This document shows positions 3,482-31,078 of a stretch of DNA of 64,000 bases, in pieces. The position numbers were made by a program, and so were the translations under genes. This stretch comes from Ascidiella aspersa. Taxonomy: Eukaryota. The stretch's first letter is position 1. Every line of letters starts with the position of its first letter. The notes under the pieces were generated by a model. The model saw nothing but the letters and a program-made list of their open reading frames with translations, was not told the origin of the DNA and ran no database searches. The stretch is taken from assembly GCA_963924565.1 (NCBI GenBank), contig OZ004612.1:1798001-1862000 (forward strand), read 5' to 3'.

Positions 3482-6400
3482 ATGAGGTTAGCATTTTTTG
3501 TTTTACTCACCTTTGTGAAACTGTCAATCAGTTCTTTAGGGTGCCAAGATTATCAGTGGCAATGTAAAAATGGAGAAGCCTGCATCGACCAATGCGATGT
3601 TTGCAATGGGTTTGCAAACTGTGACGACTTTACCGACGAATTGGAATGCAAAACTTGCAAGCAAGGCGCGTTCAGGTGCGAATTGGAAGAACGTTGTATT
3701 CTGCCAAGTCGGGTTTGCGATGGTTCAATGCTTTGTGTTACAGGCGATGATGAGTTGTACTGTACAACTTGCCCCAAAGATCGGCCTTGGAAATGTAAAA
3801 CAGGCACCAAATGCATTACTAAAAGGTCGGTGTGTGATGGGCTGAAGGACTGCGACGACAATAGTGACGAACTGAACTGCGCGATATCGTGCAATGACTT
3901 TCAGTGGAGATGCAAAGACGGGAGCGAATGTATCGATTCCCAGTCGATTTGTAACGCAATAAAAGACTGTAAAGATGGGAGCGACGAGTTGAACTGTTAT
4001 GGAAATTGCTTCAACGAAGACTGGTTTTGCCAAGATAAGAGCAGATGTATTTCTCAGGGTTGGATTTGCGACGGAATTGCAAATTGTGACGACAACACCG
4101 ACGAGATGAACTGTACAACTTGCAAAAACAACGCTTGGCTGTGTGAAGATAAAAGCAAGTGTATCGAGCAAAGTTTTGTTTGTGATGGGTTGAAGAATTG
4201 TGAAGACAACAGTGACGAGTCGAACTGCACAACGTGCCCCGACGATCGATGGAAATGCGGAAATGGAAGCGTTTGTGTTGATCAATGCTATGTTTGTAAT
4301 GGAGTGAAGTATTGTAGAGATAATAGCGACGAGTCAAACTGCGGAGCTTGCCAGGTTGGTAGACATCTAATGTGCGGTTGTTTGTCCCACCTAAGTCCAT
4401 GCAAACCAAACGGGAAGTGCATAAAGGAACATCAACTTGCAGATGGAGTTAAGGATTGTGAAAATGGAGACGACGAACCTTGTATTTGGTCTGAAGCAAG
4501 TTACTTTCAGAATTCTTGGCGCTGTTCGGATGAGTTCAACATGGACATTCTGCTTTCGTTTCGGTCTTACAATGAACAATTCAACTGCAGCAAAATACTT
4601 GGTCCTTGTGAAGATGGAAAAGACAAACGTTGCTACACTGGAGAGTGGCTTTGCTCGAACTGGGCTATTTCAAATTTGTACGAGCGAATTGACGGATTGT
4701 TTGGCAATAAACACGACCGCTGCGTCAATCCTAAACTTGGCTTTGGATTCAAATGTTTAGAATTAACGCTTGCATCGCACAAGCCAAATACATGTCGCTT
4801 ACCACAATCGAATATTTACGACGATGCTGCTCAATGTGGAGACGAGTCGGATTTGTGCTTCGTTGAAGGTGAATTTAAGTGCTTTTTGTGCTTGGATGAA
4901 AGACTGGTGATATCTCAACAACAAGTCTGCGACGGAATTGTGGACTGCTACGATCTTTCCGATGAATGTTTATGTGGAAACCAGACTGTTTGTGATGCAA
5001 TATTGGGCGACGCTAGAGACACTTGCCCTCCCAATCAAATACATTGCCACAATGAAACTGACTGCTTGAATATTGAAGATGCTTTATGCAATGAAGAAGT
5101 CAGTTGCGCGAAACAGTCCAACATTAGGTGCAGCAGTTCACGGAATCAAAGCTTAGAAACAGTTACATGCAATGTTTTTGACATAAGTTATTACACTTAT
5201 AAGTTGGCCAAAGCGACGAAATGCGACGGAAGACCCGAGTGTCAATATTTGTCTGATGAATGTGATGATTGTGCAACCCGACCCCCCTTCTGTGATGACT
5301 TGTGTGCATCAAGTAGTATATTTGAGATATTTGTCTGCCGGGGTTTATTGATGGTAGAGCAAAACGAATCAGTTTGCAACGAAATCGAAAAAAACCTTTG
5401 CCCGAAACGCTACAATTGTCGGCACGGCTCAAGGTTTGCCAGCATTGACGTCACTTTGCTTTGTGACGGAATAATCCAGTGTAATGACGAATCAGATGAA
5501 ATGGAGTCTCGGTGCAAGGACACAAGGTTTTATTGCGTCAACAAAGAACCATTGTCGGTCGACATCGACTTGGTTGAAGATGGACTACAACAGTGTTCGG
5601 ACGGAAGTGACGAATGCCCGGATGTTAGCAAGTATGACACCGTGTTTTCAAATGTGAAAGAAATGATTGCAAACCTTTTTTTTAGAGTAATGTTCTGGGT
5701 CATGGGATTTCTAGCTGTGGGTGGAAATTTTACTGTTTTTGTTACCACCTTTAAGGAAATGGCTACTTATAAAAAATCAAGTGAAGTAAAAAAAATGAAT
5801 CATTTTTTTATTTTAAATTTGTCTTTTGCCGATTTTTTGATGGGTGTTTATTTGCTTGGTATAGCTGCTAAAGGCGCCCAACTTTCAGGTGATTATTGTT
5901 TGAATGATGCCGCATGGCGAACAAGGATTCCTTGCAGTTTGTTCGGTTTTCTGGTAATCCTAGCTTCTGATGCAAGTGCTTTAATTATGGCAACAATGAC
6001 AGCTTATCGACTTTATACTGTGTGTAATCCATTTGAAACTAGGGATATAAAACTCTATAAGGTTTATTTGTCTTGTATTTCTGCATGGCTTGTAAGTATC
6101 TTGCTTGCAGCCGCACCCTTAATTCCTTACCCATCTGGTTACTTTATTTCTCATGTTTGGTTTCCAAATCTGTTTTATAAAACGTCCAGAGTTCCCCGAA
6201 ACGAAACACTGCTTCTTGCAAAACGAATTTTAAAGGATAATTTTACTGATCAACCTTGGTATGACATAAAACAACTAATAAGCTCAACATTTCCACGATT
6301 TCCTATTAAAGGTGAATTTGGTTACTATGGTGAAACTAGCGTTTGCATGCCTAGGTTGTTTGCTTCAGTAAATGAGTCTTCTTGGCAATATTCAACCTTT

Positions 6401-6783
6401 CTGATAACCCTTAACTGTACATTGTTTATTTTCATGTTTGTGTCTTATATTGTCATTTACATTAAAAGTAACAACATGTCGATGCTAAAAAGAAACAAGC
6501 CAACACTAAATTGCAAAGGCGTATTTCTCGCTTGCTTTTTACTGACTTTTGTTGCTGGATTCCTTTATGCATTTGTGGCTTCTTGGCTGTATCTGGTTTT
6601 CCACTTTCCAAAGATGTTTACATTATTAGTGCTGGCATTTTGCTCCCCATTAATAGTGCAGTGAACCCATTACTTTACTCAAACTGGCTTGATGCTTTTT
6701 ATATTCGCTGCAAAAGTCTTATTATGACCAGGATTCAAAACCTTGGCAGCGAAACTGAACCGAGCGAGAATGTGCCTGGCTAA
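3482..6783 (+). CDS. Intronless LDL-receptor class A repeat-containing rhodopsin-family GPCR (relaxin receptor/GRL101-related TM domain, no LRR); 1-bp frameshift at about 6487-6491
   Basis: Signal peptide MRLAFFVLLTFVKLSISSLG; 7-8 canonical LDLa repeats (C..CDG..DC.D.SDE.NC) followed by about 6 degenerate ones. TM1 is FWVMGFLAVGGN and TM2 is NLSFADFLMGVYL. TM6 (TDFCCWIP) and TM7 (PINSAVNPLLY) lie in the other-frame ORF 6511-6783. Adding one A to the A5 run joins the two frames. Confidence 0.9.
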
Positions 6784-13335: not shown

Positions 13336-15552
13336 CACTCACCACAGATGTTTTGATTAGACTCAAATATAAACCTTGTCCAGGCATTCAAAAAATTCAT
13401 CGTTTACTATTTTAGTATTACGGGATTAGCATAATTAATCTTTGTTCACATTTTTTGTTATTTAGAGATATTTCTTGACTCAGTAAAGAATATAAAACCC
13501 TTTCGTCAAAAAACGCTGCTTTAAAAGCAAACCTTAGATACAACAACAATAATTATTTCGACCTACTATCTGACGGTATAGTTTATATACAAACTGGTAT
13601 CGGGTATCGGCTCCATCCGATATTATCGGACATAGGTATTTCCACCAACAAATTCACAGTGAAACTTAGACATTATAAAAAACAAGTATTAGCAACACAT
13701 TTATTTAAATATGCAAAAAACAGATGCGAAGAAGAAATACAACAGCATCAAAGTATATTCAAGTGCATTAACAAAACATGGTAAAATGCATGCAATGCTA
13801 ACGAGTGGAAGTTTAAATGGTGAACTACACATTAACAAGTGGTTGAAATAAAGTAGTGGTCTATACAATAATAAATCAACATTATAACTTACATTGTTTG
13901 AGTAAAACACCATGGTGTATCCAAGTATTTAAACAATCTTGTTTATGTCAACAAAATGCATACAAATTCGCAATTGATCGAAACAGTTACAAACAAAAGT
14001 AGATAAAAATAAATTAAAGTTTAAATTAAACGTACAAAATGCAGAAATTTTAGCAATCTTTTAAATAAACTAAGTTCAACTTTTAAAATACGTGCGAGAA
14101 TTAATCTTGCAGGTTTTTGTCTAAAATCAAAGGTGCCACTTCCACCGCTCGATGTCGCCCTTGAGCTCCATTATTTAACCGCAAATAAATCTCAACTCAG
14201 CAAGCTTTAATTCTCTTAAGCCACTCCCATAGAACCACTGTCAGTAAATAACTAACTAGCCAATTACTTTTAAGCATCAATCATCTTGGACATCCCGTTT
14301 GGTGATTGGCCAATAGTAGTCACGTGATGGAAGAATGTACCTTGGTTTTTAAGGTGCAATTTTGTGTTTTTCCTTTTAAGTAAACTTAACAAATAGCCGC
14401 GTTAAAAAACGAAACGCCAAAACGTGACGTCAAATGCAAGTAAGCTTAAGAAAACACACATTTCGTTTATTTGTTAAACTCTTCGGTTGGAGAGCTGCTG
14501 CTACTTACAATACAAAAGCTACAATGATGTTATCGATTCGCGCAAAACGATCAAACGCCTTTAGTTGCTTTAGATGCCAAAACGTTGTTTTAGAGACGCA
14601 CGACCATCTCGTCTAAACCTTAAACTAGTCACCGATTTATTTGTCAAATATGCTGACTCACAATAAAGTTTTCACAGATTTTGTTAATTTTTGCAATCCT
14701 TGTTGTTGTTTTAAATAGGTATGTTATCTAAGTACTTCCAAAACTGCTTAAAATCGTTTCGCAAGTTTTTTCAAATATTTTTGCAGCGAGTTACAACTTT
14801 ACAAATTGAAATAATCGATTATTTTCCCTGATTCATTTTCGTCCATTCTGTTAAAGTTAATTTCGACACTTGTAAAACGTAAACAAAGGAAAGGTGTTAC
14901 GTAACAATGCCGAGCGCTGCGCTGTATTGTGACGCGTGTTGCCAAACAATGACTTATAGAATGTGACGTCATCAATATACCCGATAATACTCAGTTTGGC
15001 TCAAAATCGCTTGATATCTTGTATGCGGGAATAGGCGACCACTGCTCTACCAACTGAACAATAAACTTTATTTGAATTCTGCAGAGTTAGCACAATCAAG
15101 TTAGTGTAATAAAACAAAAAAGTTTTAAGTTTGGTTTTAATGAAATAACAATTTATAAACAACACTTATATGTACATTTTCTTTACTTCATATTAAACCT
15201 TTTAAATCAAATATTTGGCGTCTTATAATAATGATTTACCAACAGGATAAAAATTTTCCACATAAAATTTGATATTTTGTCTCATAAGCGAGAGTTAAAA
15301 GTGTAAATAAACTGTAAATAAATGCATTTATAGACCACTTCAAATAAATTTGGCCTATTTATTCAAAAGGATCACCAACAATAATTATTAGGAAGTTTAA
15401 TTTTTCACTTTCAAACCACGTCTTGCAAGTTTTAATATTTTGTCGCATTCTTTAATTTTCTCACTCGCCAAAGGATCGTCGATTTTTCTCCACAACTTGA
15501 TTGCTGTTTTCGAACTCTTAATTGCCTTTTCATGTAGCTTTTTTATTTTTTT

Positions 15553-18500
15553 TCATGAAAAAATCTCGGCAAGTTTTATAATGCCGTAGCACTCGTTAAT
15601 TTTTTCATTCGCCAAAGGATGGTCGATTTTTCTGCACAACTTGATTGCTGTTTTCGAACTCTGCATTGCTTTGTCATATAGCTTCATCTGCAAATAACAT
15701 TCACTGATTCGCAAGTGACAATCTGCAATACACCTCGCTACATTTTTATCGGGATCCGACGTCGAATGAAGTTCGATTTCTTGTTCAAAGCATTTCACCG
15801 CATTTTCAAACTTGTCAAGTTGTTGATACGAATGACCGACACCATAAAATGAATATTTACGTTCTTTTAATGGAAGTTGTTTTATATATTCTTCCCCTTT
15901 TTCGAAGTAAACAAGAACCTGCTCATGTTTGTTTAGTTCAAAGCAACATCTAATAAGTTCGCTATAACATTTTCCAACCATCAAACCTATCTCTACAGTT
16001 TTGTAAAAACGTAAAAACATTCCCAGAGAGGTTTCTAGTGGGTTATAAGCTTCCTCGTATCGATTAAGTTCGTTGAGACAAATTCCAGCGTTCACTCGTG
16101 CGTTTGCAACTAACAGCATAAAGTCATATCCCTGATGTCCATCACATGTGGAGATTACTTCGTTAAACCGATCTAACGCTAATTTGTAATTAATGCTGTC
16201 AAATAAATGTGTTCCAATACACCTATACATTCCAGCTCTGACACGTACTTTACTTTGCTTAAATTGTTTACTTGAGGGGTAGAGCTTATAAGCTTGTTTA
16301 AACAAATCACTTGCTCGAAGAAATTTTTTCTTTTTGACTTGAATTTTAGCCCGCAACACCATGCATTCAGCAGGGAGTTGAAATGTGTTGCCTTGAATAT
16401 AATGCTTACTCTTAGAAATATTTTCCGCTTTTTTAATGACTTTTTCAGCTTCTGTGTAGTTTTCCATTGCGACGTAAGTTTGACCAAGTTCTAGCAACGC
16501 AACTGCTGTGTCGTGATCTGAAGTTTCATCGAAGGCATTTTCACGACATTCAAGTAAATATTTCTCGCCGTATTTAATGCTTTTTTTGTATTTACCAATT
16601 CCACGGTAATATCGAGCAATATATCGTTGTGCGTTTTTCGAAACACTGTCGTTTAAAACAAGATTAATCATGTCACCAGCCTGCTCAAACATATGCTCTG
16701 TAAGATACAACGCAAACAACTCGCATTGGACTGTTCGTGCAACCATATCTACGCTGCGTAAATGCAAAGCTTTTTCGAAACATTCAATCGCATCCAAGTT
16801 CATTTCAAGTCCTTTGTAACAAATTCCCATCGAATACAAGATTACAGCCCGCATTGGATCGTGATCTTCCACGAAATCGTACGCACATCGAAAAACCATT
16901 AACGCAGTTTTACGCTGATTAACTCTATGGTAACAAACACTTTCCCAAAAGCAACTCAGTGAGTTTGCTTCTTTTGATTCAAACATATTTTTGCTTCTTG
17001 TTTTTTTTATGACCTTAATTGCCTCGTTATACAAACGTAAAAACATAATCGAAAGTATAACACGACGCCAAGTTAATTCTTTCAATTCAGATTTCTTGGT
17101 GGTGAACATTTGCAAAGTGGAAGCTAAAGAGAAAAAATCAACAATTCTTGATTTTCCATATATTTCAAGCAACAAATCATGAAAAGGTTCGAATCTTGCG
17201 TCAAGATAATCGCACTGGCGGGAGTATTTGAAGTAAACCCGCAACCTAACTTCACAGGCGAAAGCAAGTGTGAACATAAAATCATCCGATTGTTGCTGTG
17301 ATATTTGGCCTGAAGTCAATTCTCGCAGAATATCAAAAGAAGACGACGATTTGCAATTATATCGTCTACCAAGTGCTGCTATAAACAAAGTGACGCTTCG
17401 AAATACGACGTTTTTTATGTTTACTGAGTTTTCAATATCCATCAAAGCCAAGCATTTATCGATGTTGAATTTGTCAGAATCTTCTTTAAGTTGGTTTTCT
17501 AGATTCTCATCGAAACGAGGTTGTTGTAAGATGTCAATTGTTTTCATCTTCATTTGATCGTAGATTGCATCATCGCCACAAACAAAGCATATTTTAGTTA
17601 AAATATCACCCAAGTGGTAACCGTTTTTAAGGTCAATATCCCGTCCAAGATATTCAAGCATTTCAGAGACAGGTTTGATCAGCTCGGTATCCCAGGGTTT
17701 GTTCGGTGTAGCTGACCTACCAAGTGGGAACTTGCAAGCATGTGGCATCATTCCATCAAACGAAATGCCACGAGGTGTATGCGCATCAAAGAACCAATCT
17801 TGGTCGTTTTCCTGATCATTAATGTAAGGCAAAGCTAAGCTTGGTATTATGGTTTCACCAAAGTTTACAACCACAACTTGAAAAATCACAGACACCCAAC
17901 GGAAATATTCCAGTATATCGCCATAATCTGAACGATTTTGAACACCTTCTTCCAACAGATAGATGTGCTCGAAATCTGAATAAGGAGTGATTTCATTTCT
18001 AGCAAGTGATCCCATACCAACCAAAGTATATTTACAAGGAGCTGGACCTGTAGCTTCCACACAAAACTCCATTATATCTGCCATAAGCCACTTGTATTTT
18101 TCTGTGATGATTTTTTGTAAACTCTCAATCAGACTAGCTCTACGTTGATCGGTTTCTGCAAGTGAAATTGCTTTTAACGCAATATCCTTTATCCAACACC
18201 GAAAGTCTTTCACTTTAGTGACAGATGCTTCAACCAGTTGCTTCAAACTGTCCACACTGGTGTCATGGCTGCCAGCAAGTCGAAGAACATGCGAACAAAG
18301 CTCATCGAGATCTTTCTCAACCTCAGCAACGTTGTCAGGTTTCCTCACAACAGCTGCATTTAACAACACGGCGCTGCGAATGAGAGATATTTTCTTGTCT
18401 CTACCCTCGGGTAATTCATCAGCTATTTCGTGATATGCCCGGCCTAATTGGTGGATAACTTTGGCGGATTGTTCTACATCACGTTCCTTTCCGTTTGCGT

Positions 18501-18582
18501 AACATAGTGACTTTAATTCCTTTGCAAGTTCATAAGTTTTAACTTTGTAAATACTAGCTTTATTATCTGAGCACCCTTGCAT
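15553..18582 (-). CDS. Intronless nucleotidyltransferase (Pol-beta fold, GlnD/GlnE/DUF294-like) + helical substrate-binding domain + C-terminal TPR array, 1009 aa
   Basis: Motif LVGMGSLARNEITPYSDFEH fits hG[GS]x9-13Dh[DE]; candidate third carboxylate in GISFDG. DUF294_C/NTase_sub_bind-like segment NIKNVVFRSVTLFIAALG...FACEVRLR. TPR consensus (e.g. YSMGICYKGLEMNLDAIECFEKAL, YGVGHSYQQLDKFENAVKCFEQEI) recurs over the last ~480 aa. Confidence 0.92.
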   Translation of the reverse strand: MQGCSDNKASIYKVKTYELAKELKSLCYANGKERDVEQSAKVIHQLGRAYHEIADELPEGRDKKISLIRSAVLLNAAVVRKPDNVAEVEKDLDELCSHVLRLAGSHDTSVDSLKQLVEASVTKVKDFRCWIKDIALKAISLAETDQRRASLIESLQKIITEKYKWLMADIMEFCVEATGPAPCKYTLVGMGSLARNEITPYSDFEHIYLLEEGVQNRSDYGDILEYFRWVSVIFQVVVVNFGETIIPSLALPYINDQENDQDWFFDAHTPRGISFDGMMPHACKFPLGRSATPNKPWDTELIKPVSEMLEYLGRDIDLKNGYHLGDILTKICFVCGDDAIYDQMKMKTIDILQQPRFDENLENQLKEDSDKFNIDKCLALMDIENSVNIKNVVFRSVTLFIAALGRRYNCKSSSSFDILRELTSGQISQQQSDDFMFTLAFACEVRLRVYFKYSRQCDYLDARFEPFHDLLLEIYGKSRIVDFFSLASTLQMFTTKKSELKELTWRRVILSIMFLRLYNEAIKVIKKTRSKNMFESKEANSLSCFWESVCYHRVNQRKTALMVFRCAYDFVEDHDPMRAVILYSMGICYKGLEMNLDAIECFEKALHLRSVDMVARTVQCELFALYLTEHMFEQAGDMINLVLNDSVSKNAQRYIARYYRGIGKYKKSIKYGEKYLLECRENAFDETSDHDTAVALLELGQTYVAMENYTEAEKVIKKAENISKSKHYIQGNTFQLPAECMVLRAKIQVKKKKFLRASDLFKQAYKLYPSSKQFKQSKVRVRAGMYRCIGTHLFDSINYKLALDRFNEVISTCDGHQGYDFMLLVANARVNAGICLNELNRYEEAYNPLETSLGMFLRFYKTVEIGLMVGKCYSELIRCCFELNKHEQVLVYFEKGEEYIKQLPLKERKYSFYGVGHSYQQLDKFENAVKCFEQEIELHSTSDPDKNVARCIADCHLRISECYLQMKLYDKAMQSSKTAIKLCRKIDHPLANEKINECYGIIKLAEIFS

Positions 18583-20400
18583 ATTACAACTGATTGTAAA
18601 TTTCTAAAAAAGCAAGTAAAGTTGTAAAATGCAGGTTAATCTTGTTATTTACCGATTAAATGCACTTCTGATCTAAAAAGTACGACTTCTAAATTACAAG
18701 CAACGAAGAACTATTAACTATAATTCAGTCTACATTGAAGCAACTCAATATTATGCTTAACCAATTCAGGTGGGCTGGCTGTGACGCGACTATTACCGGA
18801 TGTGACGCGACAATCACCGGCCGTGACGCAGTGAATAAATATGAGCCTAGCCATTGTTTGTCGAAGCGAGCAACAAGCAAAGGTAAAATACACAACTATT
18901 TATTGGTTTAATAAATAAATGTGTTTAAATACGTTAAATGTAAATCTTGTTTGATAAAACTTTAAGAAATAAAGCTAAATGTCAATGTCAAAGATTATCA
19001 GACTGCTTGTTATATTTGAAAGTAAATTGTGACCCAGTGGTTACTTAGTTAAAATAAACATGACCTAACTTAACCGATTTTGGGTAATTTGATTTTGTAA
19101 TTGTCACCTTTTTAGTTGAAACACCTGAATTAATTCACATGTGCAAATGTGGATATTTTGTATTGGTAATACATTTTTAGCTCGAACTAAACCAGCTTTA
19201 TGGTCATTTGTTTGATATATAGATATATATGCACACAGTGAACTTGTATTTAAGCTGTTTGCGACATGATGGTGTTTAGCACTTTTTTTCGTTTTTTTAT
19301 GCGGCAATTTCGGGAAATTAACAAATTTGTTTTTTGTTCTCGTTTAACCAAATTGCTGAAATTAGTGGGTCTTTATCACCTCCTAACGGACAAACATTTA
19401 CTCAACATATTTTAAAATAAGGATTATATTACAACTTGTTATATGAAGCCAATATGATATGCTGTAAATTACGTAACACTTTTAACTTAAAATGGCTCAA
19501 AAATACCAAGGGTCTTTATCGTTACAATGCAATGTGCGGTTTGGTCACATGGCTTGGGTTGAAATGAATTGTGGTTATTTAACATTTTACTCTAAAATAA
19601 AGCTATTTATCTAATTGTTTGCACGTAAAACGATTATCATATGTTGGTATTTCTTATTTTTAGTTAAGGTTTTACTTAAACAAGCTTGTTATTTTTTTAA
19701 CTTGAATTTTACTTAAACTTAGCTAAAAGCGCCTATAAACCACTGTAGCCTGATACACTCTAGTATTGGCCGTAGCTCTTAAACCACCCAAGTGAAACCA
19801 ACTTTTTATTGACAATTAATGTCGAAGCTTACAAATAACACAATAGCAGTTACACATGAGCACATTTTGAACTTAATATTTTGCGGCTTGAGCTTTGTAT
19901 AATGTTTAACTAGTTCGAGAAATATCAAGACCAGTGTATTACATCTAACTAAAACTTCCGTTATACTCCACAGATTAACTGGCGTAAATTTAACTAGCTT
20001 AGAAATAAAAAATAACAATAAATTGAGTGATATGTCGCCCTATAATTTATTTGAAACTTGCGTAGGAGTTTCGTTTTACAAGGTTATGTAAGTTTCCTGC
20101 AGTTCACATTAATAGATCTTCACACACACACTTTAAAAACAGCAATTAATTAAATTCCTGCTACATTCACTCGAAATTCACCTCAAGTCAATCAATCAGT
20201 TGCCAATCTAGCATTGCGTTCTTGTGGCTTCCAGCATGCTTTGGGCTGCAAAGAAGTTGTTGCAAAAATTTAACAAACCTTGTTTATTTAAGCGTTTCTA
20301 CAGCGGGCCTTGGTTGAAGAAAGAGTTGTAAGGGTAATTTAAGTGCAGAAAAACGCTAACTTTCATGTTGACCTTTTGTTAAAATATTTGTTATTTTTGT

Positions 20401-20944
20401 TGCATGGCAGATATAGTTTTCGTTAAATTGCATGGCAGATATAGTTTTCGTTAAATTGCATGGCAGATATAGTTTTCGTTAAATTACATGGCAGATATAG
20501 TTTTCTTTAAATTGCATGGCAGATATAGTTTTCGTTACATTGCATGGCAGATATAGTTTTCGTTACATTGCATGGCAGATATAGTTTTCGTTACATTGCA
20601 TGGCAGATATAGTTTTCGTTAAATTACATGGCAGATATAGTTTTCGTTACATTGCATGGCAGATATAGTTTTCGTTACATTGCATGGCAGATATAGTTTT
20701 CGTTAAATTACATGGCAGATATAGTTTTCTTTAAATTGCATGGCAGATATAGTTTTCGTTACATTGCATGGCAGATATAGTTTTCGTTACATTGCATGGC
20801 AGATATAGTTTTCGTTACATTGCATGGCAGATATAGTTTTCGTTACATTACATGGCAGATGTAGTTTTCGTTACATTACATGGCAGATATAGTTTTCGTT
20901 ACATTACATGGCAGATATAGTTTTCGTTATATTGCATGGCAGAT
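20401..20944. repeat. 28-bp minisatellite, about 19 copies
   Basis: Unit TGCATGGCAGATATAGTTTTCGTTA(A/C)AT repeated head-to-tail with no spacers. Confidence 0.97.
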
Positions 20945-21229
20945 GTGTTCTCTAGATACATTGCTACTTATTTATACAGCGGATGTTTTCATTTGTACCA
21001 ACATTTTGGTGTTGATTTGCTTTTATGTACAATTTTATGCTTAAAGAGTTGCACTCTAGATGTATTTGGAAATTATTTAAAAACTTCAAATGAGAAATGT
21101 TCCTTCTGAAAGGCGGATTATGTGCTTACTTTGTTTGGTGGTTGATTATCATTATGCCTTGGTCGTTAGATATAAGGTTTTATTGACATTTTTTGGTTGT
21201 TATGCTGTTATCGTTGGATATATTTATTT

Positions 21230-22330
21230 GCTGCGTTTTTTTTTAATTTTGACCTTTTTGTTTTGACATTTGTTAAGGAATTTTGTTCTTGTCTCTTTCG
21301 GTTGTTTAAATGAAGTTGTTCTTGTCTTCTATGATTGTTCAATTTTTTTTTTACATTTTGCTTGTTTGAAGGATTCTGTTTTGACTTTTCGTTATTGTCG
21401 GAAGAATATTGTTCTTGCTTTTTTAGTTATTTGAAGAATTTTGTTTTTTACTTTTTTTGGTTGTTTGAAGGATTTTGTTTTTACTATTTTTGGCATTTTG
21501 TTTTTGTCTATTTTGGTTGTTTGAAACGATTTTGTTTAGCGTTTTTTATTGTATGAAGGAATTTGTTTTAACTTTTTTGGGTTGTTTACCTGCAATAATT
21601 TGTTTTTGTCTTTTTTGATTGTTTGAAGGATTTTGTTTTTACTTTTTTGGTTGTTTGAAGTATTTTGTTTTTGTCTTTTTTGGTGGTTGAATGAAATATT
21701 TTATTTTGAACATTTTGATTGAGGAAAAGATTTAGTTTTTATCTGACTTTTTTCGGTGGTCGAAGGATTCTGCTTGTGTCTTTTTTGATGGTTGGTTGAA
21801 GGATTTTGTTTTTACTATTTTTGGCATTTTGTTTTTGTCTATTTTGGTTGTTTGAAACGATTTTGTTTAGCGTTTTTTATTGTATGAGGGAATTTGTTTT
21901 AACTTTTTTGGGTTGTTTACCTGCAATATATATTTATATATTTTTTTGGGTTGTTTGAAGGATTTTGTTTTTACTTTTTTCGTTGTTTAACTGCAATAAT
22001 TTGTTTTTGTCTTTTTTGATTGTTTGAAGGATTTTGTTTTTACTTTTTTGGTTGTTTGAAGTATTTTGTTTTTGTCTTTTTTGGTGGTTGAATGCAATAT
22101 TTTATTTTGAACTTTTTGATTGAGGAAAAGATTTAGTTTTTATCTGACTTTTTTCGGTGGTCGAAGGATTCTGTTTGTGTCTTTTTTGATGGTTGGTTGA
22201 AGAATTTTTTACGTGTTTTTGTTCTTTGACCGATTTTGTTTTGCATTTTATGGTTGTTTGAAGGATTTTACTTTCTGATTGTTTGAAAGATTTTGTTCTT
22301 GTTTTTTTAAGTGTGTGAATAATTATTTAG
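21230..22330. repeat. Degenerate T-rich tandem repeat (~31 bp) with higher-order duplication
   Basis: Recurrent TTTTTTGGTTGTTTGAAGGATTTTGTTTTTAC; multi-unit blocks are repeated, e.g. about 21590-21810 versus 21990-22205. Confidence 0.85.
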
Positions 22331-22689
22331 TTTTTGTTGTTGTTGGAAATATTTTGATTGTTCAATGATAGCGTGTTTACCTTTTTTTTTTAATAATAGA
22401 CTATTGCCATTTCTTTTTTGCTTGGTGGTTTGCTTTGAATGTGTTTACATTGTTTGGGCGTTTACGGATTAGTTTTATTAGAATAGTAATTTGTCATTTC
22501 TTGTAATTTATGATGATAAAAGTATTGCCTGTATATTTTTTCCACTAAAAAAACGATGGTGTGGTCGTACAAGCGCGCAGCTCGAAAACATATGGGATTT
22601 GTGCAGTCAAATGTATCTAACCATAGCTTATTTTAAGCCTTATTGTTTTCTATAACCTGGGGGATTTTCTATAAGCTGGGGGATTTGAC

Positions 22690-23400
22690 TGTCATGTTGG
22701 CTGGTTATAAGTGTCATGTTGGCAGGTGGTCGGTGTCATGTTGGCTGGTGGTGGCATGTTTTTTATGTGCAGGTTACATGGACATAAGTTATTTGATTAT
22801 AAAGTTGGCCGAGGTGGGTTGTGCGTCATTGGTTATATAGGTAGTCGGTTGGCTGGTTATAAGTGTCATGTTGGCAGGTGGTCGGTGTGGTCGGTGTCAT
22901 GTTGGCTGGCGGTTAGTGTCATGTTGGCTTGTGTTCGGTGTCATGTTGGCAGGTGGTCGGTGTCATGTTGGCAGGCGGTCGGTGTGGTCGGTGTCATGTT
23001 GGCTGGTGGTTAGTGTCATGTTGGTAGGTGATCGGTGTCATGTTGGCAGGTGATCGGTGTCATGTTGGCAGGTGGTCGGTGTCATGTTGTCTGGTGGTCG
23101 GTGTCATATTGGCTTGTGGCTGTTGGTCGCTGTTAGCAGGTAGTGGTCTCTCAATGCCATGTTAGTTTCATTTTGGCCGATTGCCAGTGTCATGTCATAT
23201 TTGAAGTGCCATGTTAGCAATTTATCGGTGGCATTTAAGCAGATTGCCGGTGTCATGTTGGCAGGTAACCAGTGTCATGTTGGCAAGTGGTGCTGCTGTC
23301 ATGTTGGCAAGTGGTTCTGCTGTCCGGTTGGCAAGTGGTTCTGCTGTCATGTTGGCAAGTGGTGCTGCTGTCACGTTGGCAGTTGGCCAGTGTCCTGTTT
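22690..23400. repeat. Degenerate 21-22-bp minisatellite (GTGTCATGTTGGCAGGTGGTCG); paralog at about 53650-54140
   Basis: Directly visible repeat units, which also explain the repetitive small ORFs here. Confidence 0.9.
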
Positions 23401-27622: not shown

Positions 27623-30600
27623 TTATAAAGAAGTTTTTTTTCGGGCACGGTTTTCAATTTCTAATATTTCATCGCATGCTTTAATTTTCTCACTCGCCAA
27701 AGGATGGTCGATTTTTCTCCACAACTTGATTGCTGTTTTCAAACTCTGCATTGCTTTGTCATGCAGCTTCATCTGCAAATAACATTCACCGATTCGCTTG
27801 TGACAATCTGCAATAAACATCGCTACTACTTTATCGGGTTCCAAAGTCGAAAGAAGTCCGATTTCTTGTTCAAAGCATTTCACCGCATTTTCAAACTTGC
27901 CAAATTGTTGATACGAATGACCGACGAAATAAATTAAACTTTTTCTTTCTTTAATTTGAACCATTTTTATGTATTCTTGCCCTTTTTCGAAATAAGCAAC
28001 AACCCTCTCAGGTTTGTTTAATTCGAAGCTACAATTAATGAGTTCCCTATAACATTTCCCAATCATAACTTGCCACTTCACAGTTTTATGAAATCCTAAA
28101 TACAATCCCAGAGAAGTTTCCAATGTGTTATAAGCTTCCTCGTTTCGTTCAAGTTTGTTGAGACAAATTCCAGCGTTAAATCGCGCGTTTGTAACTAACT
28201 GCACAAAGTAATGCCCCTGATGTCCGTCACATATGGAGATTACTTCTTTAAACTGATCTAACGCTAATTTGTAGTTATTGTTGTTACAATTATGTATTCC
28301 AATACATATATAAATTTCAGCTCTAACACGAACTTTGGTCCGCTGAAATTGTTTACTTAAGGGGTAGAGCTCATAAACTTCCTCATACAATTCACTTGCT
28401 CGTAGAAAATTTTCCTTTTTTAGGTGTAATATAGCCCGGAACACTTTGCATTCAGCAGGGAGATTAAATTTGTCGTCGGAAACGTAATACTTACTCTTTG
28501 AAATATTTTCCGCCATTTCAATTGCCTTTTCCGCTTGTGTGTAGTTTTGAACAGCAAGGTAAGTTTGAGAAAATTCTAGCAACGCTCCTGCTGTTTCGTG
28601 ATCTGAAGTTTCATCGAAGGCCTTTTCACGACGTTGAAGTAGATATTTATCACCGAATTCAATGCTTTTATTGTATTTACCAATTCTAGAGTAATATTGA
28701 GCAATATAGAGCTGTGCATCTTCCGAAACATTGTCTTTTAGAACAAGGTTAATCATATTGCCAGCCTTCTCAAGTAAACCTTCTGTAACACACAACCCGA
28801 ACAACTCGCATTAGGCTCTTCGTGAAACCGTAGCTGTTCTGCTTAAATGCAAGACTTTTTCATAACATTTAATCGCATCTAAGTTCATTCCAAGCCTTTT
28901 GTAAAATCTTCCCATCATATGTAACATTGCAGCCCGCATTGGATCGTGGTCTTCCATATAATCCAACGGAACTTGAAAGCACTTTAAAGCGGTTTCATGC
29001 CGATTAACTCTAAAGTGACAAAAACCTTCCATGAAGTAGTTCTTATCGGGTTTTGTTTCTTTCAACTCAAATGTATTTCTGCTCCTGTTTTTTTTATGAC
29101 CTCAATTGCTTCGTTATAAAAACGTAAGGAAAGAAGCGAAAGTATAACACGACGCCAAGTTAATTGGTTTGATTCCGATTGCTTGATGGTGAACATTTGC
29201 AAAGTAGAAGCTGAAGAGAAAAATGCAACAATTCTTGATTTTCCAAATACTTCGAGCAACAAATCAGGAAAAGGTTCGAATCTTGCGTCAAGATAATCGC
29301 ACTGGCGGGAGTATTTGAAGTAAACCCGCAACCTAACTTCACAGGCGAAAGCAAGTGCGAACATAAAATCATCCGATTGTTGCTGTGATATTTTTTCTTC
29401 TGAAGTCAATTCCCGCAGAATATCAAAAGAAGACGACGATTTGTATATATGTCTTCTACCAAGTGCTGCTATAAACAAAGTGACGCTTCGAAATACGACG
29501 CTTTTGATGTTTACAGAGTTTTCATTATGTATCAAAGCCAAGCATTTATCGATGTTGAATTTGTCAGTATCCTCCTTAAGTTGTTTTTCTAGATTCTCAT
29601 CGCAACGAGGTTGTTGTAAGAAGTCAATGGTTTTCATCTTCATTTGATCGTAGATTGCATCTTCGCCACAAACAAAGCATATTTTAGTAAAAATATTACC
29701 CAAGTGGTAACCGTTTTTAAAGTCATTATGCCGTCCAAGATATTCAAGCATTTTAGAGACAGGTTTGATCAGCTCAGTATCCCAGGGTTTGTTCGGTGTA
29801 GCTGACCTACCAAGTGGGAACTTGCAAGCAAAAGTAACCATTCCATCAAACGAAATGCCACGAGGTGTGTGCGCATCAAAGAACCAGCCCTTGCCATTAT
29901 TTTCCTCGGGATCATTAATGAAAGGCAACGAAACGTGAGGTATTATGGTTTCACCAAAATTTACAACCACAACTTGAAACATCACAGACACCCAACGGAA
30001 ATATTCAAGTATATCGTCATAACCTGAACGATTTTGAACACCTTCTTCCAACAAATAGATGTGCTCGAAATCTGAATAAGGAGTGATTTCATTTCTAGCA
30101 AGTGATCCCATTCCAACCAAAGCATATTTACAAGGAGCAGGACCTGTAGCTTCCACACAAAACTCCATTATATCTGCCATGAGCCACTTGTATTTTTCTG
30201 TGATGATTGTTTGTAAACTCTCTATCAGAATAGCTCTACGTTGATCGGATTCTGCAAGTGAAATTGCTTTTAACGCAATGTCCTTTATCCAATGCCTAAA
30301 GTCTTTTATTTTAGTGACAGATGCTTTCACCAGTTGCTTCAAACTGTCCACACCGGTTTCATGGCTGCCAGCAAGTTGAAGAACACGCGAACAAAGCTCA
30401 TCAAGATTTTTCTCAATCTCAGCAACGTTGCCAGGATTTCTCACAATAGCTGCTTTTAACAAAACGGCGCTTCGAATGTAGGATATTTTCTTGTCGCGTC
30501 CTTTAGTTAGTCGTGCAATTTTTTGATACGCAAGGCCGAGTTTGTGGATGATTTTTGCAGATTTCTATGGCTCTTTCTCTTTTCCATTCACATAGCAGCA

Positions 30601-30672
30601 TTCTGACTTTAAATATTTTGCTAAAGGTTCAGTAAAGCTTGTCAAATATTCAACAGACACAATGTTTCCCAT
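27623..30672 (-). pseudogene. Full-length NTase-TPR paralog, disrupted
   Basis: Starts MGNIVSVEYL at 30672. Three lesions: in-frame TAG at codon 36 (30565-30567), a frameshift at the A8 run near 29088-29095, and TAA at 28811-28813 where the paralog has CAA. The NTase motif GMGSLARNEITPYSDFEH is identical to the intact copy. Confidence 0.92.
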
Positions 30673-30970
30673 TTTAGGATTAAAATGATCAGCTATGAAA
30701 AAGAAAGTGTAACTTTCTTAAATGTTTTAAATTTAAACAAATGAAAATTCAAATAGCAGAATAAAGCTAGCTTAATTTAGTTCAGTCAATCTTAAAATAT
30801 ATATATATATATATATTTGTCAACCAAACCGTCGTCAGTATATTCTAATTAATGTAAATTTCTATTAAATAAAACGTAGAACGAATAATAATTAATCGAA
30901 TGTTTCTAACTAATCTTAATTCAAAACTTAACTTTGAACATGGTGGAGAAATTTTTAAGTATATATTATT

Positions 30971-31078
30971 TACATCACGTTCCTTTCCGTTTGCGTAACA
31001 TAATGACTTTAATTCATTTAAAAGTTCAAAAGTTTTACCTTTGCAAATACAAGCTTTATTATCTGAACACCCTTGCAT
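30971..31078 (-). pseudogene. 5' fragment (36 codons) of an NTase-TPR paralog most similar to the intact copy
   Basis: MQGCSDNKACICKGKTFELLNELKSLCYANGKERDV versus MQGCSDNKASIYKVKTYELAKELKSLCYANGKERDV. The upstream flank 31080-31280 resembles 18585-18800. Confidence 0.9.

Follow-up and report, generated by a model that had tools for sequence, protein, structure and literature searches.

On the minus strand of the window, by which we mean the whole 64,000-nucleotide stretch of Ascidiella aspersa DNA analysed here, lies an animal gene whose product joins a nucleotidyltransferase of the GlnE/DrrA class to a long TPR superhelix. It belongs to a family of about 80 genes evolving by birth and death, in which the enzyme stays constant and the predicted binding grooves diversify, a pattern known from germline-encoded immune receptors. 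We put the probability at roughly 0.55 that the family consists of cytosolic, recognition-coupled protein AMPylases, diversified for use in host-microbe (or other genetic) conflict. Judged from the evolutionary pattern and the domain architecture, the use is probably in host-microbe conflict, which would make the role an immune one.

The gene and its family

The features of the locus are listed in Table 1. The frame of 1009 codons has zero internal stops, matched itself at 100% in a genome search and, in DNA of 33-37% G+C, is far beyond chance expectation. The list of open reading frames, Pfam and AlphaFold2 agree with a preliminary description of this DNA, which had recognized a nucleotidyltransferase with TPRs in this frame. 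The description had also called the gene intronless. This holds for the coding region, but a polypyrimidine tract with an AG is found 22-38 nt upstream of the ATG, and equivalents are present 20-27 nt upstream in 11 of the 11 paralogs inspected. Because an acceptor-like site precedes the ATG in the window gene and in these paralogs, a 5' non-coding exon or a trans-spliced leader is likely. The placement of the AATAAA signal behind the stop codon is matched in two other paralogs, and the remaining paralogs have one about 86 nt downstream. The gene is located at 1.81 Mb of a 33-Mb contig, with an LDLa-GPCR gene on one side, a multi-exon gene of metazoan type on the other and a G+C content equal to that of its surroundings. 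No signal peptide or membrane span was visible in the protein sequence when read by eye.

Table 1. Features of the AMPylase-like-TPR gene and of related sequences in the window
Feature	Positions	Strand	Details and basis
Coding sequence of the AMPylase-like-TPR protein	15553..18582	-	ATG start, 1009 aa and TGA stop; open reading frame list
Polypyrimidine tract and AG, candidate 3' splice or trans-splice acceptor	18604..18620	-	Read from the sequence; role inferred
AATAAA polyadenylation-like signal	15542..15547	-	8 nt past the first base of the stop codon; script on paralog flanks
N-terminal helical cap, aa 1-110	18253..18582	-	TPR-like hairpins; conserved between species
GS-ATase/DrrA-type nucleotidyltransferase core and helical domain, aa ~111-500	17083..18252	-	
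Catalytic motif G189-M-G191-S ... D203-F-E205 (G-x11-D-x-E)	17968..18018	-	
Family-specific, extremely conserved insert, aa 244-300	17683..17853	-	Modelled without regular structure
TPR solenoid, aa 501-1008	15559..17082	-	~12-13 hairpins, 42-residue KLC-type period; Pfam, AlphaFold2, entropy, omega
Another family copy with a frameshift, either a pseudogene or an assembly error	27656..30633	-	tblastn, Pfam
Isolated fragment like family aa 1-74	30866..31078	-	50% identity; tblastn

The genome-wide copy count called for in the preliminary description gave at least 80 DUF294 loci above the Pfam cutoff, 59 of these 80 in open frames of at least 850 aa. About 48 are close copies (48 matches to the window protein in the genome search), and the copies lie mostly within a tandem cluster of roughly 2 Mb. 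The gene is thus multi-copy, and neither slow evolution nor contamination, two of the other findings that the description had named as speaking against its view, was encountered. Pseudogenised copies occur, one of them inside the window, 9 kb from the intact gene. In this copy the frame changes somewhere between 29044 and 29095, so that aa 16-542 and aa 526-1004 are read in different frames; Pfam found DUF294 and a weak DUF294_C on one open reading frame and TPRs on the other, and tblastn aligned it to the window protein with 80.6% identity over the enzyme half and 63.5% over the TPR half. When 21 copies from the A. aspersa genome were sampled, 16 grouped in one lineage-specific clade. The two halves of the genes are mosaic, sharing the same nearest neighbour in only 9 of 31 paralogs.

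The enzyme half

Pfam assigned DUF294 (PF03445) to aa 146-215 of the window protein with 30.3 bits, above the gathering cutoff of 21 bits. The preliminary description had predicted a DUF294_C match (PF10335) in addition, but the Pfam scan gave none in the window protein; the neighbouring copy scored 17.8 bits, below the cutoff of 22.5, and precomputed PF10335 matches are present in many homologues. For the window protein, the scan reported none of the Fic, NB-ARC, NACHT and AAA_16 domains and, at E values up to 1, neither an F-box nor an OTU domain, and the PADLOC models of bacterial defence did not match it.

AlphaFold2 modelled aa 1-520 with a pLDDT of 81 and a pTM of 0.84, and the full-length protein with values of 83 and 0.74. 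In the predicted fold, a helical (KNTase_C/HEPN-like) domain comes after a pol-beta alpha/beta core, as it does in the GS-ATase/DrrA group. In a fold search of the model, the alignment with DrrA and GlnE covered aa 70-500, including the helical 'substrate-binding' domain that had been proposed earlier. The placement in the GlnE/GlnD/DUF294 class, and not with cGAS, OAS or poly(A) polymerases, is likewise upheld by fold and profile searches, in which DrrA was closest. Neither Mab21 nor CD-NTase proteins were among the Foldseek and VIA-align matches listed, or in the Pfam and PADLOC results, and we rejected a cGAS-like synthase since fold and motif point to DrrA/GlnE.

The motif GMGSLARNEITPYSDFE, aa 189-205 of the window protein, conforms to the G-x11-[D/E]-x-[D/E] pattern as G191-x11-D203-F-E205. 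It is unchanged in 31 paralogs apart from one S192P, and in cross-species alignments of 41 and 48 sequences it is invariant, as are D203 and E205 in the Holosporaceae relatives; the metal-binding motif that had been described as intact is therefore conserved across paralogs and species. The residues invariant in the 31 paralogs are G189, G191, D203, E205, E243, D266, D276, E300, K390, R395 and R446, most of which are also invariant across species and in bacterial relatives. Sequence searches of the PDB with the single protein or with a first profile of 16 sequences found nothing significant, and a family profile that included the bacterial relatives retrieved DrrA with an E value of 9.3e-6. 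The profile alignment sets GSLA-x5-YSD-x-E against the catalytic G-x11-D-x-D of DrrA (segment GSLAKAQATEYSDLD), a motif reported, with the roles of its residues, as G98-x11-D110-x-D112 (PMC8097203). In terms of sequence spacing only, E243 follows E205 by 38 residues, the distance in DrrA from D112 to D150, which together with D249 supplies additional metal-binding carboxylates on later strands. The insert of aa 244-300, with the conserved residues W263, D266, G272, D276, K284, P286, G288, R289 and E300, has the lowest entropy of the protein (0.10-0.19 bits) and was modelled by AlphaFold2 without secondary structure at pLDDT 44-63.

GlnE, GlnD and DrrA, the close relatives in this class that have been characterized, all place AMP or UMP from a nucleotide triphosphate on a hydroxyl group of a target protein. 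The enzyme half is most likely a protein AMPylase or NMPylase, and it is predicted to be active since it retains the metal-binding and base residues. In the fold search, the AMP-removing N-domain of GlnE matched nearly as well as the AMP-adding domain, and both addition and removal of AMP are therefore conceivable.

Diversification of the TPR half and range of the family

In the AlphaFold2 model, aa 501-1008 form 25 helices, and Pfam recognized TPR_12, TPR_1, TPR_2 and TPR_8 between aa ~518 and 990 (E=2.5e-25 for TPR_12). The full-length fold search returned only generic long TPR solenoids, including the TPR superhelices of OGT and SPINDLY. Variation differs greatly between the two halves of the protein. 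Entropy is 0.8-1.45 bits in the TPR half against 0.1-0.3 bits in the enzyme half, and pairwise identity among paralogs is 65.3% against 90.5%. The enzyme half has a dN of 0.047 and an omega of 0.32, whereas the TPR half has a dN of 0.216 and an omega of 0.70, reaching 1.24 in the youngest pairs. Variability further switches from helix to helix with the 42-residue period (1.18 bits in A helices, 0.74 bits in B helices, p=0.0012), and omega is 0.99 (CI 0.83-1.18) in A helices and 0.51 (0.42-0.62) in B helices. By the general structure of TPRs, the A helices line the inner groove. A repeat array with a diversifying and presumably ligand-facing surface, a feature of STAND proteins, is thus present, and by entropy, omega and the contrast between A and B helices the TPRs behave as a diversifying recognition module, in accordance with the sensor-like function first suggested for them.

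Single TPR sites accumulate 19-24 non-synonymous and 0 synonymous changes. A Suzuki-Gojobori-style count at p<0.05 selected 13 of 470 TPR sites and one enzyme site; the 13 do not exceed the multiple-testing expectation and are not significant after correction, and gene conversion or recombination among paralogs breaks the assumptions of such tree-based counts. We thus regard positive selection at individual TPR sites as suggestive. Since the mean omega of the TPR half does not exceed 1 and the per-site test was not significant, relaxed constraint on a solvent-exposed face could explain much of the pattern.

The family is found in tunicates, amphioxus, octocorals, an annelid and obligate intracellular bacteria, and was absent from vertebrates, arthropods and nematodes among the named matches. 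All tunicate copies, including those of the ascidians Ciona, Clavelina and Styela, form one clade (SH-aLRT 100), and the tree's other major clade contains the bacterial proteins. Homology of the enzyme modules is clear for Parachlamydiaceae, Rickettsiales and Holosporaceae, with identities of 25-43%. The horizontal origin raised in the preliminary description is accordingly not a recent one, because the tunicate copies form one clade and lie in a chromosomal context; an old exchange between animals and intracellular bacteria, in either direction, is evident. The canonical bacterial DUF294 outgroup has branches of more than 4.6 substitutions per site and gave long-branch artefacts, and the tree is read without a direction of transfer. 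A 'TPRP-like' gene from a study of horizontal transfer in amphioxus (PMC13350694) was set aside, as it is not described there as a nucleotidyltransferase.

Proposed mechanism and alternatives

The protein would act in the cytosol through two modules, a nucleotidyltransferase (aa ~110-500, behind the cap) and the TPR superhelix (aa 501-1008). The former, being of the GlnE/DrrA class, would transfer AMP or another NMP to a hydroxyl group of a target protein. The groove, which differs between paralogs, most likely binds a protein or peptide. The TPRs may hand the bound partner to the active site for modification, in the way those of FICD and OGT do, or its binding may release the enzyme; allosteric gating by the TPRs and selection of the substrate by the TPRs are equally compatible with the evidence. 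We favour recognition-coupled AMPylation in conflict because a constant enzyme combined with diversified grooves is the pattern of germline immune receptors. Two recent reviews give FICD and SelO as the only eukaryotic AMPylases and describe the GS-ATase/DrrA fold as bacterial (PMC8097203, PMC12409994). If our reading is right, the family would join these two as a third class of animal AMPylase with a structure of its own, made up not of one housekeeping gene but of about 80 genes in which a constant enzyme is paired with diversified grooves. Ciona and Styela carry homologues.

A more specific form of this reading is tentative. Here, dozens of germline-encoded, hypervariable TPR receptors wired to a DrrA/GlnE-type AMPylase would constitute an arm of innate immunity, absent from the literature searched, in tunicates, and probably in amphioxus, octocorals and some annelids; a recognized microbial or guarded host protein would be covalently AMPylated, and the gene would have been exchanged with intracellular bacteria in an arms race. 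Protein AMPylation, in infection so far known only as a bacterial weapon, would then be tied to host recognition, the host employing the chemistry that intracellular bacteria use on its cells. Animal pattern recognition would thereby gain a new kind of effector chemistry, and the principle of joining sensor repeats to an effector enzyme, familiar from NLRs and bacterial Avs/STAND proteins, would be extended. With expanded sets in Chlamydiae, Rickettsiales and Holosporales as well as in animals, the family also offers a tractable case of conflict modules exchanged between domains of life.

Alternatively, the proteins may be endogenous regulators whose TPRs choose the cell's own clients, in the way that FICD chooses BiP and GlnE chooses glutamine synthetase, the expansion serving many housekeeping targets or tissues and not defence against pathogens. 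Purifying selection of an ordinary kind acts on the enzyme core, the presence of the family in tunicates, amphioxus, octocorals and an annelid shows it to be old in animals, and FICD, the known eukaryotic TPR-AMPylase, uses its TPRs on an endogenous substrate (PMC8065156). Housekeeping regulators, however, are usually low in copy number and widely retained, with conserved binding surfaces, whereas this family numbers about 80 copies, pseudogenes occurring alongside, has undergone tandem birth-and-death with bursts in single lineages, shows an omega near 1 on the groove side with sites of 19-24 non-synonymous and no synonymous changes and, judging by the named matches, was lost in vertebrates, arthropods and nematodes. 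We consider endogenous regulation unlikely. Still less probable is a conflict between self and non-self or within the genome, such as allorecognition in an ascidian that is colonial or fuses, gamete incompatibility or a toxin-like selfish family with a cell-killing enzyme. A hypervariable recognition surface with tandem expansions would suit any recognition arms race, the same enzyme occurs on NB-ARC-TPR scaffolds of the death type, the isolated AMPylase domain of DrrA is cytotoxic (PMC8097203) and PMC8195603 names ascidians as one of the animal groups that show allo-incompatibility. On the other hand, the determinants of allorecognition known from animals work at the cell surface, while no signal peptide or membrane span is visible here, and the family extends to amphioxus, an annelid and the solitary ascidians Ciona and Styela. 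The present evidence does not separate such a conflict from immunity.

The preliminary description had also allowed for a nucleotide signal. An enzyme that makes a second messenger in the manner of cGAS and CD-NTases, or that modifies a small molecule or RNA as aminoglycoside nucleotidyltransferases and MenT do, with the TPRs as the activating sensor, has a small chance of being correct, and the signal is disfavoured by the structural relatives, all close ones being protein-modifying enzymes. The remaining proposal, that the sequence is no functional animal gene but a contaminant, an insert recently acquired by horizontal transfer or a repeat family in decay whose frames merely happen to be open, could appeal to the close sequence relatives in intracellular bacteria, the intronless coding region and the broken copies. 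It is already contradicted by the 33-Mb contig with metazoan-type neighbours and matching G+C, the acceptor-like tract and AATAAA signals flanking the gene, the 59 of 80 loci with long frames, the enzyme omega of 0.3 and the single tunicate-wide clade.

Relation to known systems

A literature search found no characterized animal protein of this architecture, in agreement with the preliminary description; most 'DUF294' matches in it were false positives from the prefix of DUF2946. The AMPylation domain of the Legionella pneumophila effector DrrA/SidM (PDB 6yx5, 3nku) is 12-13% identical overall to the window protein. DrrA is a secreted bacterial effector that targets Tyr77 of Rab1 and has GEF and PI4P-binding domains, both absent from the tunicate protein, which is the product of an animal chromosomal gene family and has in addition the N-terminal cap, a conserved insert of about 65 aa after the third acidic residue and the C-terminal TPR solenoid. 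The tunicate protein also differs from GlnE and GlnD in lacking a duplicated nucleotidyltransferase and PII-binding, HD or ACT domains, and no link of the family to nitrogen regulation is evident. When the family profile was run against 40 alphaproteobacterial genomes, GlnD, GlnE and DUF294 proteins were left unscored. Canonical bacterial DUF294/DUF294_C proteins (PF03445/PF10335) share PF03445 with the window protein above the cutoff, and, in language-model features, the ESM-Atlas clusters closest to it consist of stand-alone bacterial DUF294+DUF294_C proteins (score 0.92-0.95). A canonical DUF294 protein is nevertheless very distant from the family profile (E=0.31), and CBS or cNMP partner domains are missing from the window protein.

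FICD/HYPE is alike in outline, as a metazoan TPR module fused to a protein AMPylase, and the substrate choice of this Fic enzyme is set by its TPRs (PMC8065156). The Fic fold, however, is unrelated to the pol-beta nucleotidyltransferase, and FICD is single-copy, anchored in the ER membrane and conserved, with two TPRs against about 13. With STAND/NLR and TPR sensors (Apaf-1/NLRs, bacterial Avs, IFITs) the family has in common a repeat solenoid that diversifies on the side facing the ligand, clusters shaped by tandem birth-and-death and the fusion of the sensor to an effector domain, but the window protein has no NTPase switch domain and no Death, TIR or CARD adaptor.

The NEX2 proteins of Neochlamydia, 50 in one genome, have the order F-box-[OTU]-DUF294-TPR (Domman et al. 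2014, PMC4209131). Compared by published description, they resemble the window protein in carrying DUF294 before C-terminal TPRs and in their massive expansion within a genome, and differ in the N-terminal F-box and occasional OTU domain, neither of which the window protein has. NEX2 and the TPR-containing relatives in intracellular bacteria are presumed effectors against the host, not host receptors. A Holosporaceae genome of 1.9 Mb has about 12 effector-like genes of this kind, with DUF294/SidM_N and TPR_12. In two further relatives, P0331 and P0337, the enzyme occupies the effector position of STAND proteins (AAA_16/NB-ARC), in the order DUF294-NB-ARC-DUF7779-TPR.

The gene and its copies

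The reading frame proposed in the preliminary description was confirmed and starts with ATG. On the protein, Pfam gave DUF294 (PF03445) at aa 146-215 (30.3 bits, curated cutoff 21), a weak SidM_N match over the motif region and strong TPRs over aa ~518-990 (TPR_12, E=2.5e-25). GlnD models of NCBIfam matched weakly in the same stretch as DUF294 and the motif. The DNA around the gene has the same composition as the gene itself (31-38% G+C), and the window spans 1.80-1.86 Mb on a contig of 33 Mb, the assembly comprising 308.6 Mb in 75 contigs. Metazoan-type genes are present around the ORF. One is the multi-exon LCCL/EGF/Sushi gene already remarked upon in the preliminary description. The other, without introns, encodes a relaxin/LGR-like GPCR with seven LDL-receptor class A repeats (LDLa, E=2.6e-52) followed by a rhodopsin-family 7TM region (7tm_1, E=1.5e-10).

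A polypyrimidine-AG tract lies shortly upstream of the ATG, and was found at the equivalent place in 11 of 11 paralogs inspected. AATAAA occurs 6-10 nt or ~86 nt after the stop in the gene and in paralog flanks. Both are signals of eukaryotic type and would fit a spliced leader or a non-coding 5' exon. The N termini are of two types. Among the 31 intact paralogs aligned, ten on contig C6 (L003, L004, L005, L007, L020 and L024-L028) start with MGNIVS, a match to the PROSITE N-myristoylation pattern, while the gene in the window and the remaining paralogs start with MQGCSDNK. These starts suggest that membrane-anchored and soluble subtypes may exist.

The genome-wide copy count called for in the preliminary description revealed a multi-copy family. 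The genome contains 48 matches to the protein with 70-89% identity, the majority without stops, on the minus strand and at 0.7-2.4 Mb of C6. DUF294 loci above the Pfam cutoff number 80 on seven contigs, 59 of them within open frames of at least 850 aa. A second, frameshifted copy and a family fragment are found in the window. More divergent DUF294 open frames (859-1114 aa) form small clusters at 22.15-22.17 Mb and 28.08-28.09 Mb of C6 and at 9.03-9.04 Mb of contig C2, so that several subfamilies lie outside the main 0.7-2.7 Mb cluster.

Two adjacent ORFs elsewhere in the window had no Pfam match, and tblastn showed no relation to the AMPylase-TPR family. The strong GC and AT skew at 20400-23119 stems from a block of tandem repeats. 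An 11-bp satellite, TTGGCTGGGCT, is near-perfect and gives rise to a G+C spike and to four overlapping pseudo-ORFs of 277-299 aa on both strands.

Features of the window with their positions
Feature	Positions	Strand	Details
GPCR-like ORF	3482-6664	+	intronless, 1060 aa
DUF294/DrrA-type enzyme-TPR gene	15553-18582	-	1009 aa
Catalytic string GMGSLARNEITPYSDFE		-	aa 189-205, read in the ORF
Most conserved segment of the family	17683-17853	-	aa 244-300
Polypyrimidine-AG tract	18604-18620	-	22-38 nt upstream of the ATG
Tandem repeat block	20400-23119		comprises the next three entries
Tandem repeat	20400-20944		28-bp unit x19.5 (96%)
Complex T-rich repeats	21355-22195		32-331 bp
Repeats	22848-23119		44/97 bp
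Second family copy	27656-30633		frameshift near 29044-29095
Family fragment	30866-31078
11-bp satellite	36119-36957		76 copies, 99% matches
ORF	55415-56179	-	254 aa
ORF	56605-57426	-	273 aa

The enzyme half

An AlphaFold2 model of aa 1-520, built from 41 homologues, is of good confidence (pLDDT 81, pTM 0.84). Significant Foldseek matches in the PDB were obtained solely with the AMPylation domain of DrrA/SidM, an AMPylating effector of Legionella (probability 1.00, E 5e-6), and with both nucleotidyltransferase domains of the E. coli glutamine synthetase adenylyltransferase GlnE (probability 1.00, E 7e-6 to 1e-4); kanamycin nucleotidyltransferase followed with an E of 0.28. Neither the single protein nor a 16-sequence profile found a match in the PDB by sequence. 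An enzyme-only profile of 31 sequences including bacterial relatives (A4) ranked DrrA first (E 9.3e-6). Together with the PF03445 match over its cutoff, these results bear out the earlier assignment to the GlnD/GlnE/DUF294 class, and we regard an enzyme of the GS-ATase/DrrA type as very probable.

In the A4 alignment, the family sequence GSLArkeitpYSDfE lies over DrrA GSLAKAQATEYSDLD, and the invariant pair K390/R395 aligns with a K/R pair of the DrrA helical domain. The DrrA string represents the motif G98-x11-D110-x-D112; D110, D150 and D249 bind Mg2+, and D112 deprotonates the target tyrosine (PMC8097203). The version in our protein is G191-x11-D203-x-E205. The spacing between E205 and E243 is 38 residues, identical to that between D112 and D150 in DrrA, and E243 may be the counterpart of D150. 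Across the 31 intact paralogs, no variation occurs at G189, G191, D203, E205, E243, D266, D276, E300, K390, R395 or R446. Six of these residues, D203, E205, D276, K390, R395 and R446, are still invariant once the proteins from a Holosporaceae bacterium described below are included. Conservation in the family peaks at aa 244-300, a segment that lacks a counterpart in DrrA and GlnE and that AlphaFold2 modelled with low confidence as a loop without regular structure.

The TPR half

A full-length AlphaFold2 model (pLDDT 83, pTM 0.74) contains 25 helices across aa 501-1008, and a full-length fold search retrieved generic long TPR solenoids, including the TPR superhelices of OGT and SPINDLY. The two halves were compared in the alignment of the 31 intact paralogs, with dN and dS calculated by the Nei-Gojobori method. 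Column entropy is 0.1-0.3 bits in the enzyme half and 0.8-1.45 bits in the TPR half, and median pairwise identity is 90.5% and 65.3%, respectively. The corresponding values are 0.047 and 0.216 for dN, 0.144 and 0.304 for dS, and 0.32 and 0.70 for omega, which reaches 1.24 in the TPR half of the ten youngest pairs; these and the following selection statistics were computed ignoring recombination.

Variability along the TPR half recurs with a sharp period of 42 residues. The helix-A signature L-G-x-x-Y is found in the odd-numbered helices, and the helix-B signature Y-x-E-A...F-x-K-A-L in the even-numbered ones. The inner, ligand-binding groove of TPR arrays is lined by A helices. Mean entropy is 1.18 bits in A helices and 0.74 bits in B helices (Mann-Whitney p=0.0012), with 7.5 and 4.0 non-synonymous changes per site and synonymous rates that are alike. 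Omega is 0.99 (95% CI 0.83-1.18) in A helices and 0.51 (0.42-0.62) in B helices, a difference with P<0.0005 in a bootstrap over helices. Since omega averaged over whole A helices is ~1 despite their buried positions, the paralog comparison implies that some groove residues would be under positive selection. Single sites T791, F794, I834 and G914 display 19-24 non-synonymous against 0 synonymous changes, and a crude per-site selection test on the paralogs gave no significance after multiple testing.

Only 9 of the 31 paralogs had the same nearest paralog in both halves, and the enzyme half shows a twofold lower dS. The two halves thus have partly different histories, a pattern indicative of gene conversion or exchange of cassettes among paralogs. 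Tandem receptor clusters typically show such exchange, which restricts what the selection tests can tell.

Relatives, origin and possible function

The enzyme module alone matched 1,531 clusters at E<=1e-3 and 426 at E<=1e-30 (50%-identity clusters, 1.84 billion representatives). Named animal members come from the tunicates Ciona, Clavelina and Styela, three Branchiostoma species, the octocorals Xenia and Paramuricea, and the annelid Owenia; they are labelled 'uncharacterized' or auto-named 'Protein-PII uridylyltransferase N-terminal domain-containing' or 'KLC1'. Among 185,579 species genomes of bacteria and archaea, a pattern scan picked out just one, that of Holosporaceae bacterium 'Namur', an intracellular symbiont. 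Its 1.9 Mb harbour ~12 very divergent family genes (L033 and L055-L065; 1,200-2,270 aa), laid out as DUF294/SidM_N plus TPR_12 like the tunicate family. A 1,166-aa pentapeptide-repeat protein is encoded immediately upstream of one of them. The family profile matched 0 of 40 other sampled genomes of this class. With the 'Namur' enzyme as query, Parachlamydiaceae (where the enzyme is also fused to a methyltransferase), Rhabdochlamydiaceae, Rickettsiaceae, Midichloriaceae, Ca. Jidaibacter acanthamoebae and one gammaproteobacterial MAG were added. Nearly all of these are obligate intracellular symbionts. A 50-member F-box-(OTU)-DUF294-TPR family, NEX2, has been reported in Neochlamydia (Domman et al. 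2014, PMC4209131). Canonical DUF294 is very distant from the tunicate family (E 0.31 against the family profile, branches >4.6).

In a taxon-labelled tree, every tunicate sequence, among them seven of this genome, fell into one clade (SH-aLRT 100), with one copy of this genome sister to a Ciona protein (99). Amphioxus, Owenia, octocorals, all bacteria and the NB-ARC fusions fell on the opposite side (100), the octocoral sequences nested within the bacterial assemblage (98). A broader tree contained 21 copies of this genome, 16 of which grouped in a single lineage-specific clade. On the basis of the tunicate-wide and lineage-specific clades, the gene in the window is a tunicate gene, inherited vertically and recently expanded locally. 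As a recent event, the possible horizontal origin raised in the preliminary description is therefore rejected, but an older exchange, in either direction, between animals (or their protist-like ancestors) and intracellular bacteria is evident in the phylogeny.

As the reading with the best support, we propose that a constant GS-ATase/DrrA-type protein nucleotidyltransferase, predicted and probably active, is joined to a diversified TPR groove, a putative binder of a protein or peptide partner, and that the two are deployed together as a repertoire of ~80 genes. The most likely function is recognition-coupled protein AMPylation in host-microbe conflict (probability roughly 0.55); for an immune role of the family as such, we consider the odds about even. 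Among the alternatives, endogenous regulation ranks first, ahead of allorecognition or selfish conflict; enzymes that act on non-protein substrates or produce second messengers would come third, and an artefact is the least probable. No PADLOC model matches the protein, and we found no description of an animal DUF294/DrrA-type enzyme-TPR family in the literature covered, which leaves out most subscription journals. In reviews of 2021 and 2025, FICD and SelO are the only AMPylases of eukaryotes that are named (PMC8097203, PMC12409994).

With regard to recognition-coupled AMPylation, two relatives of 2,058-2,254 aa on a 697-kb contig (P0331 and P0337) carry the same DUF294-type enzyme N-terminal to AAA_16/NB-ARC-DUF7779-TPR, the position held by the effector in STAND sensors. 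FICD is a known animal TPR-AMPylase that selects BiP via its TPRs (PMC8065156). Its catalytic fold is Fic, unrelated to the enzyme fold described here. FICD and OGT/SPINDLY are precedents for a TPR groove that hands a protein substrate to a transferase.
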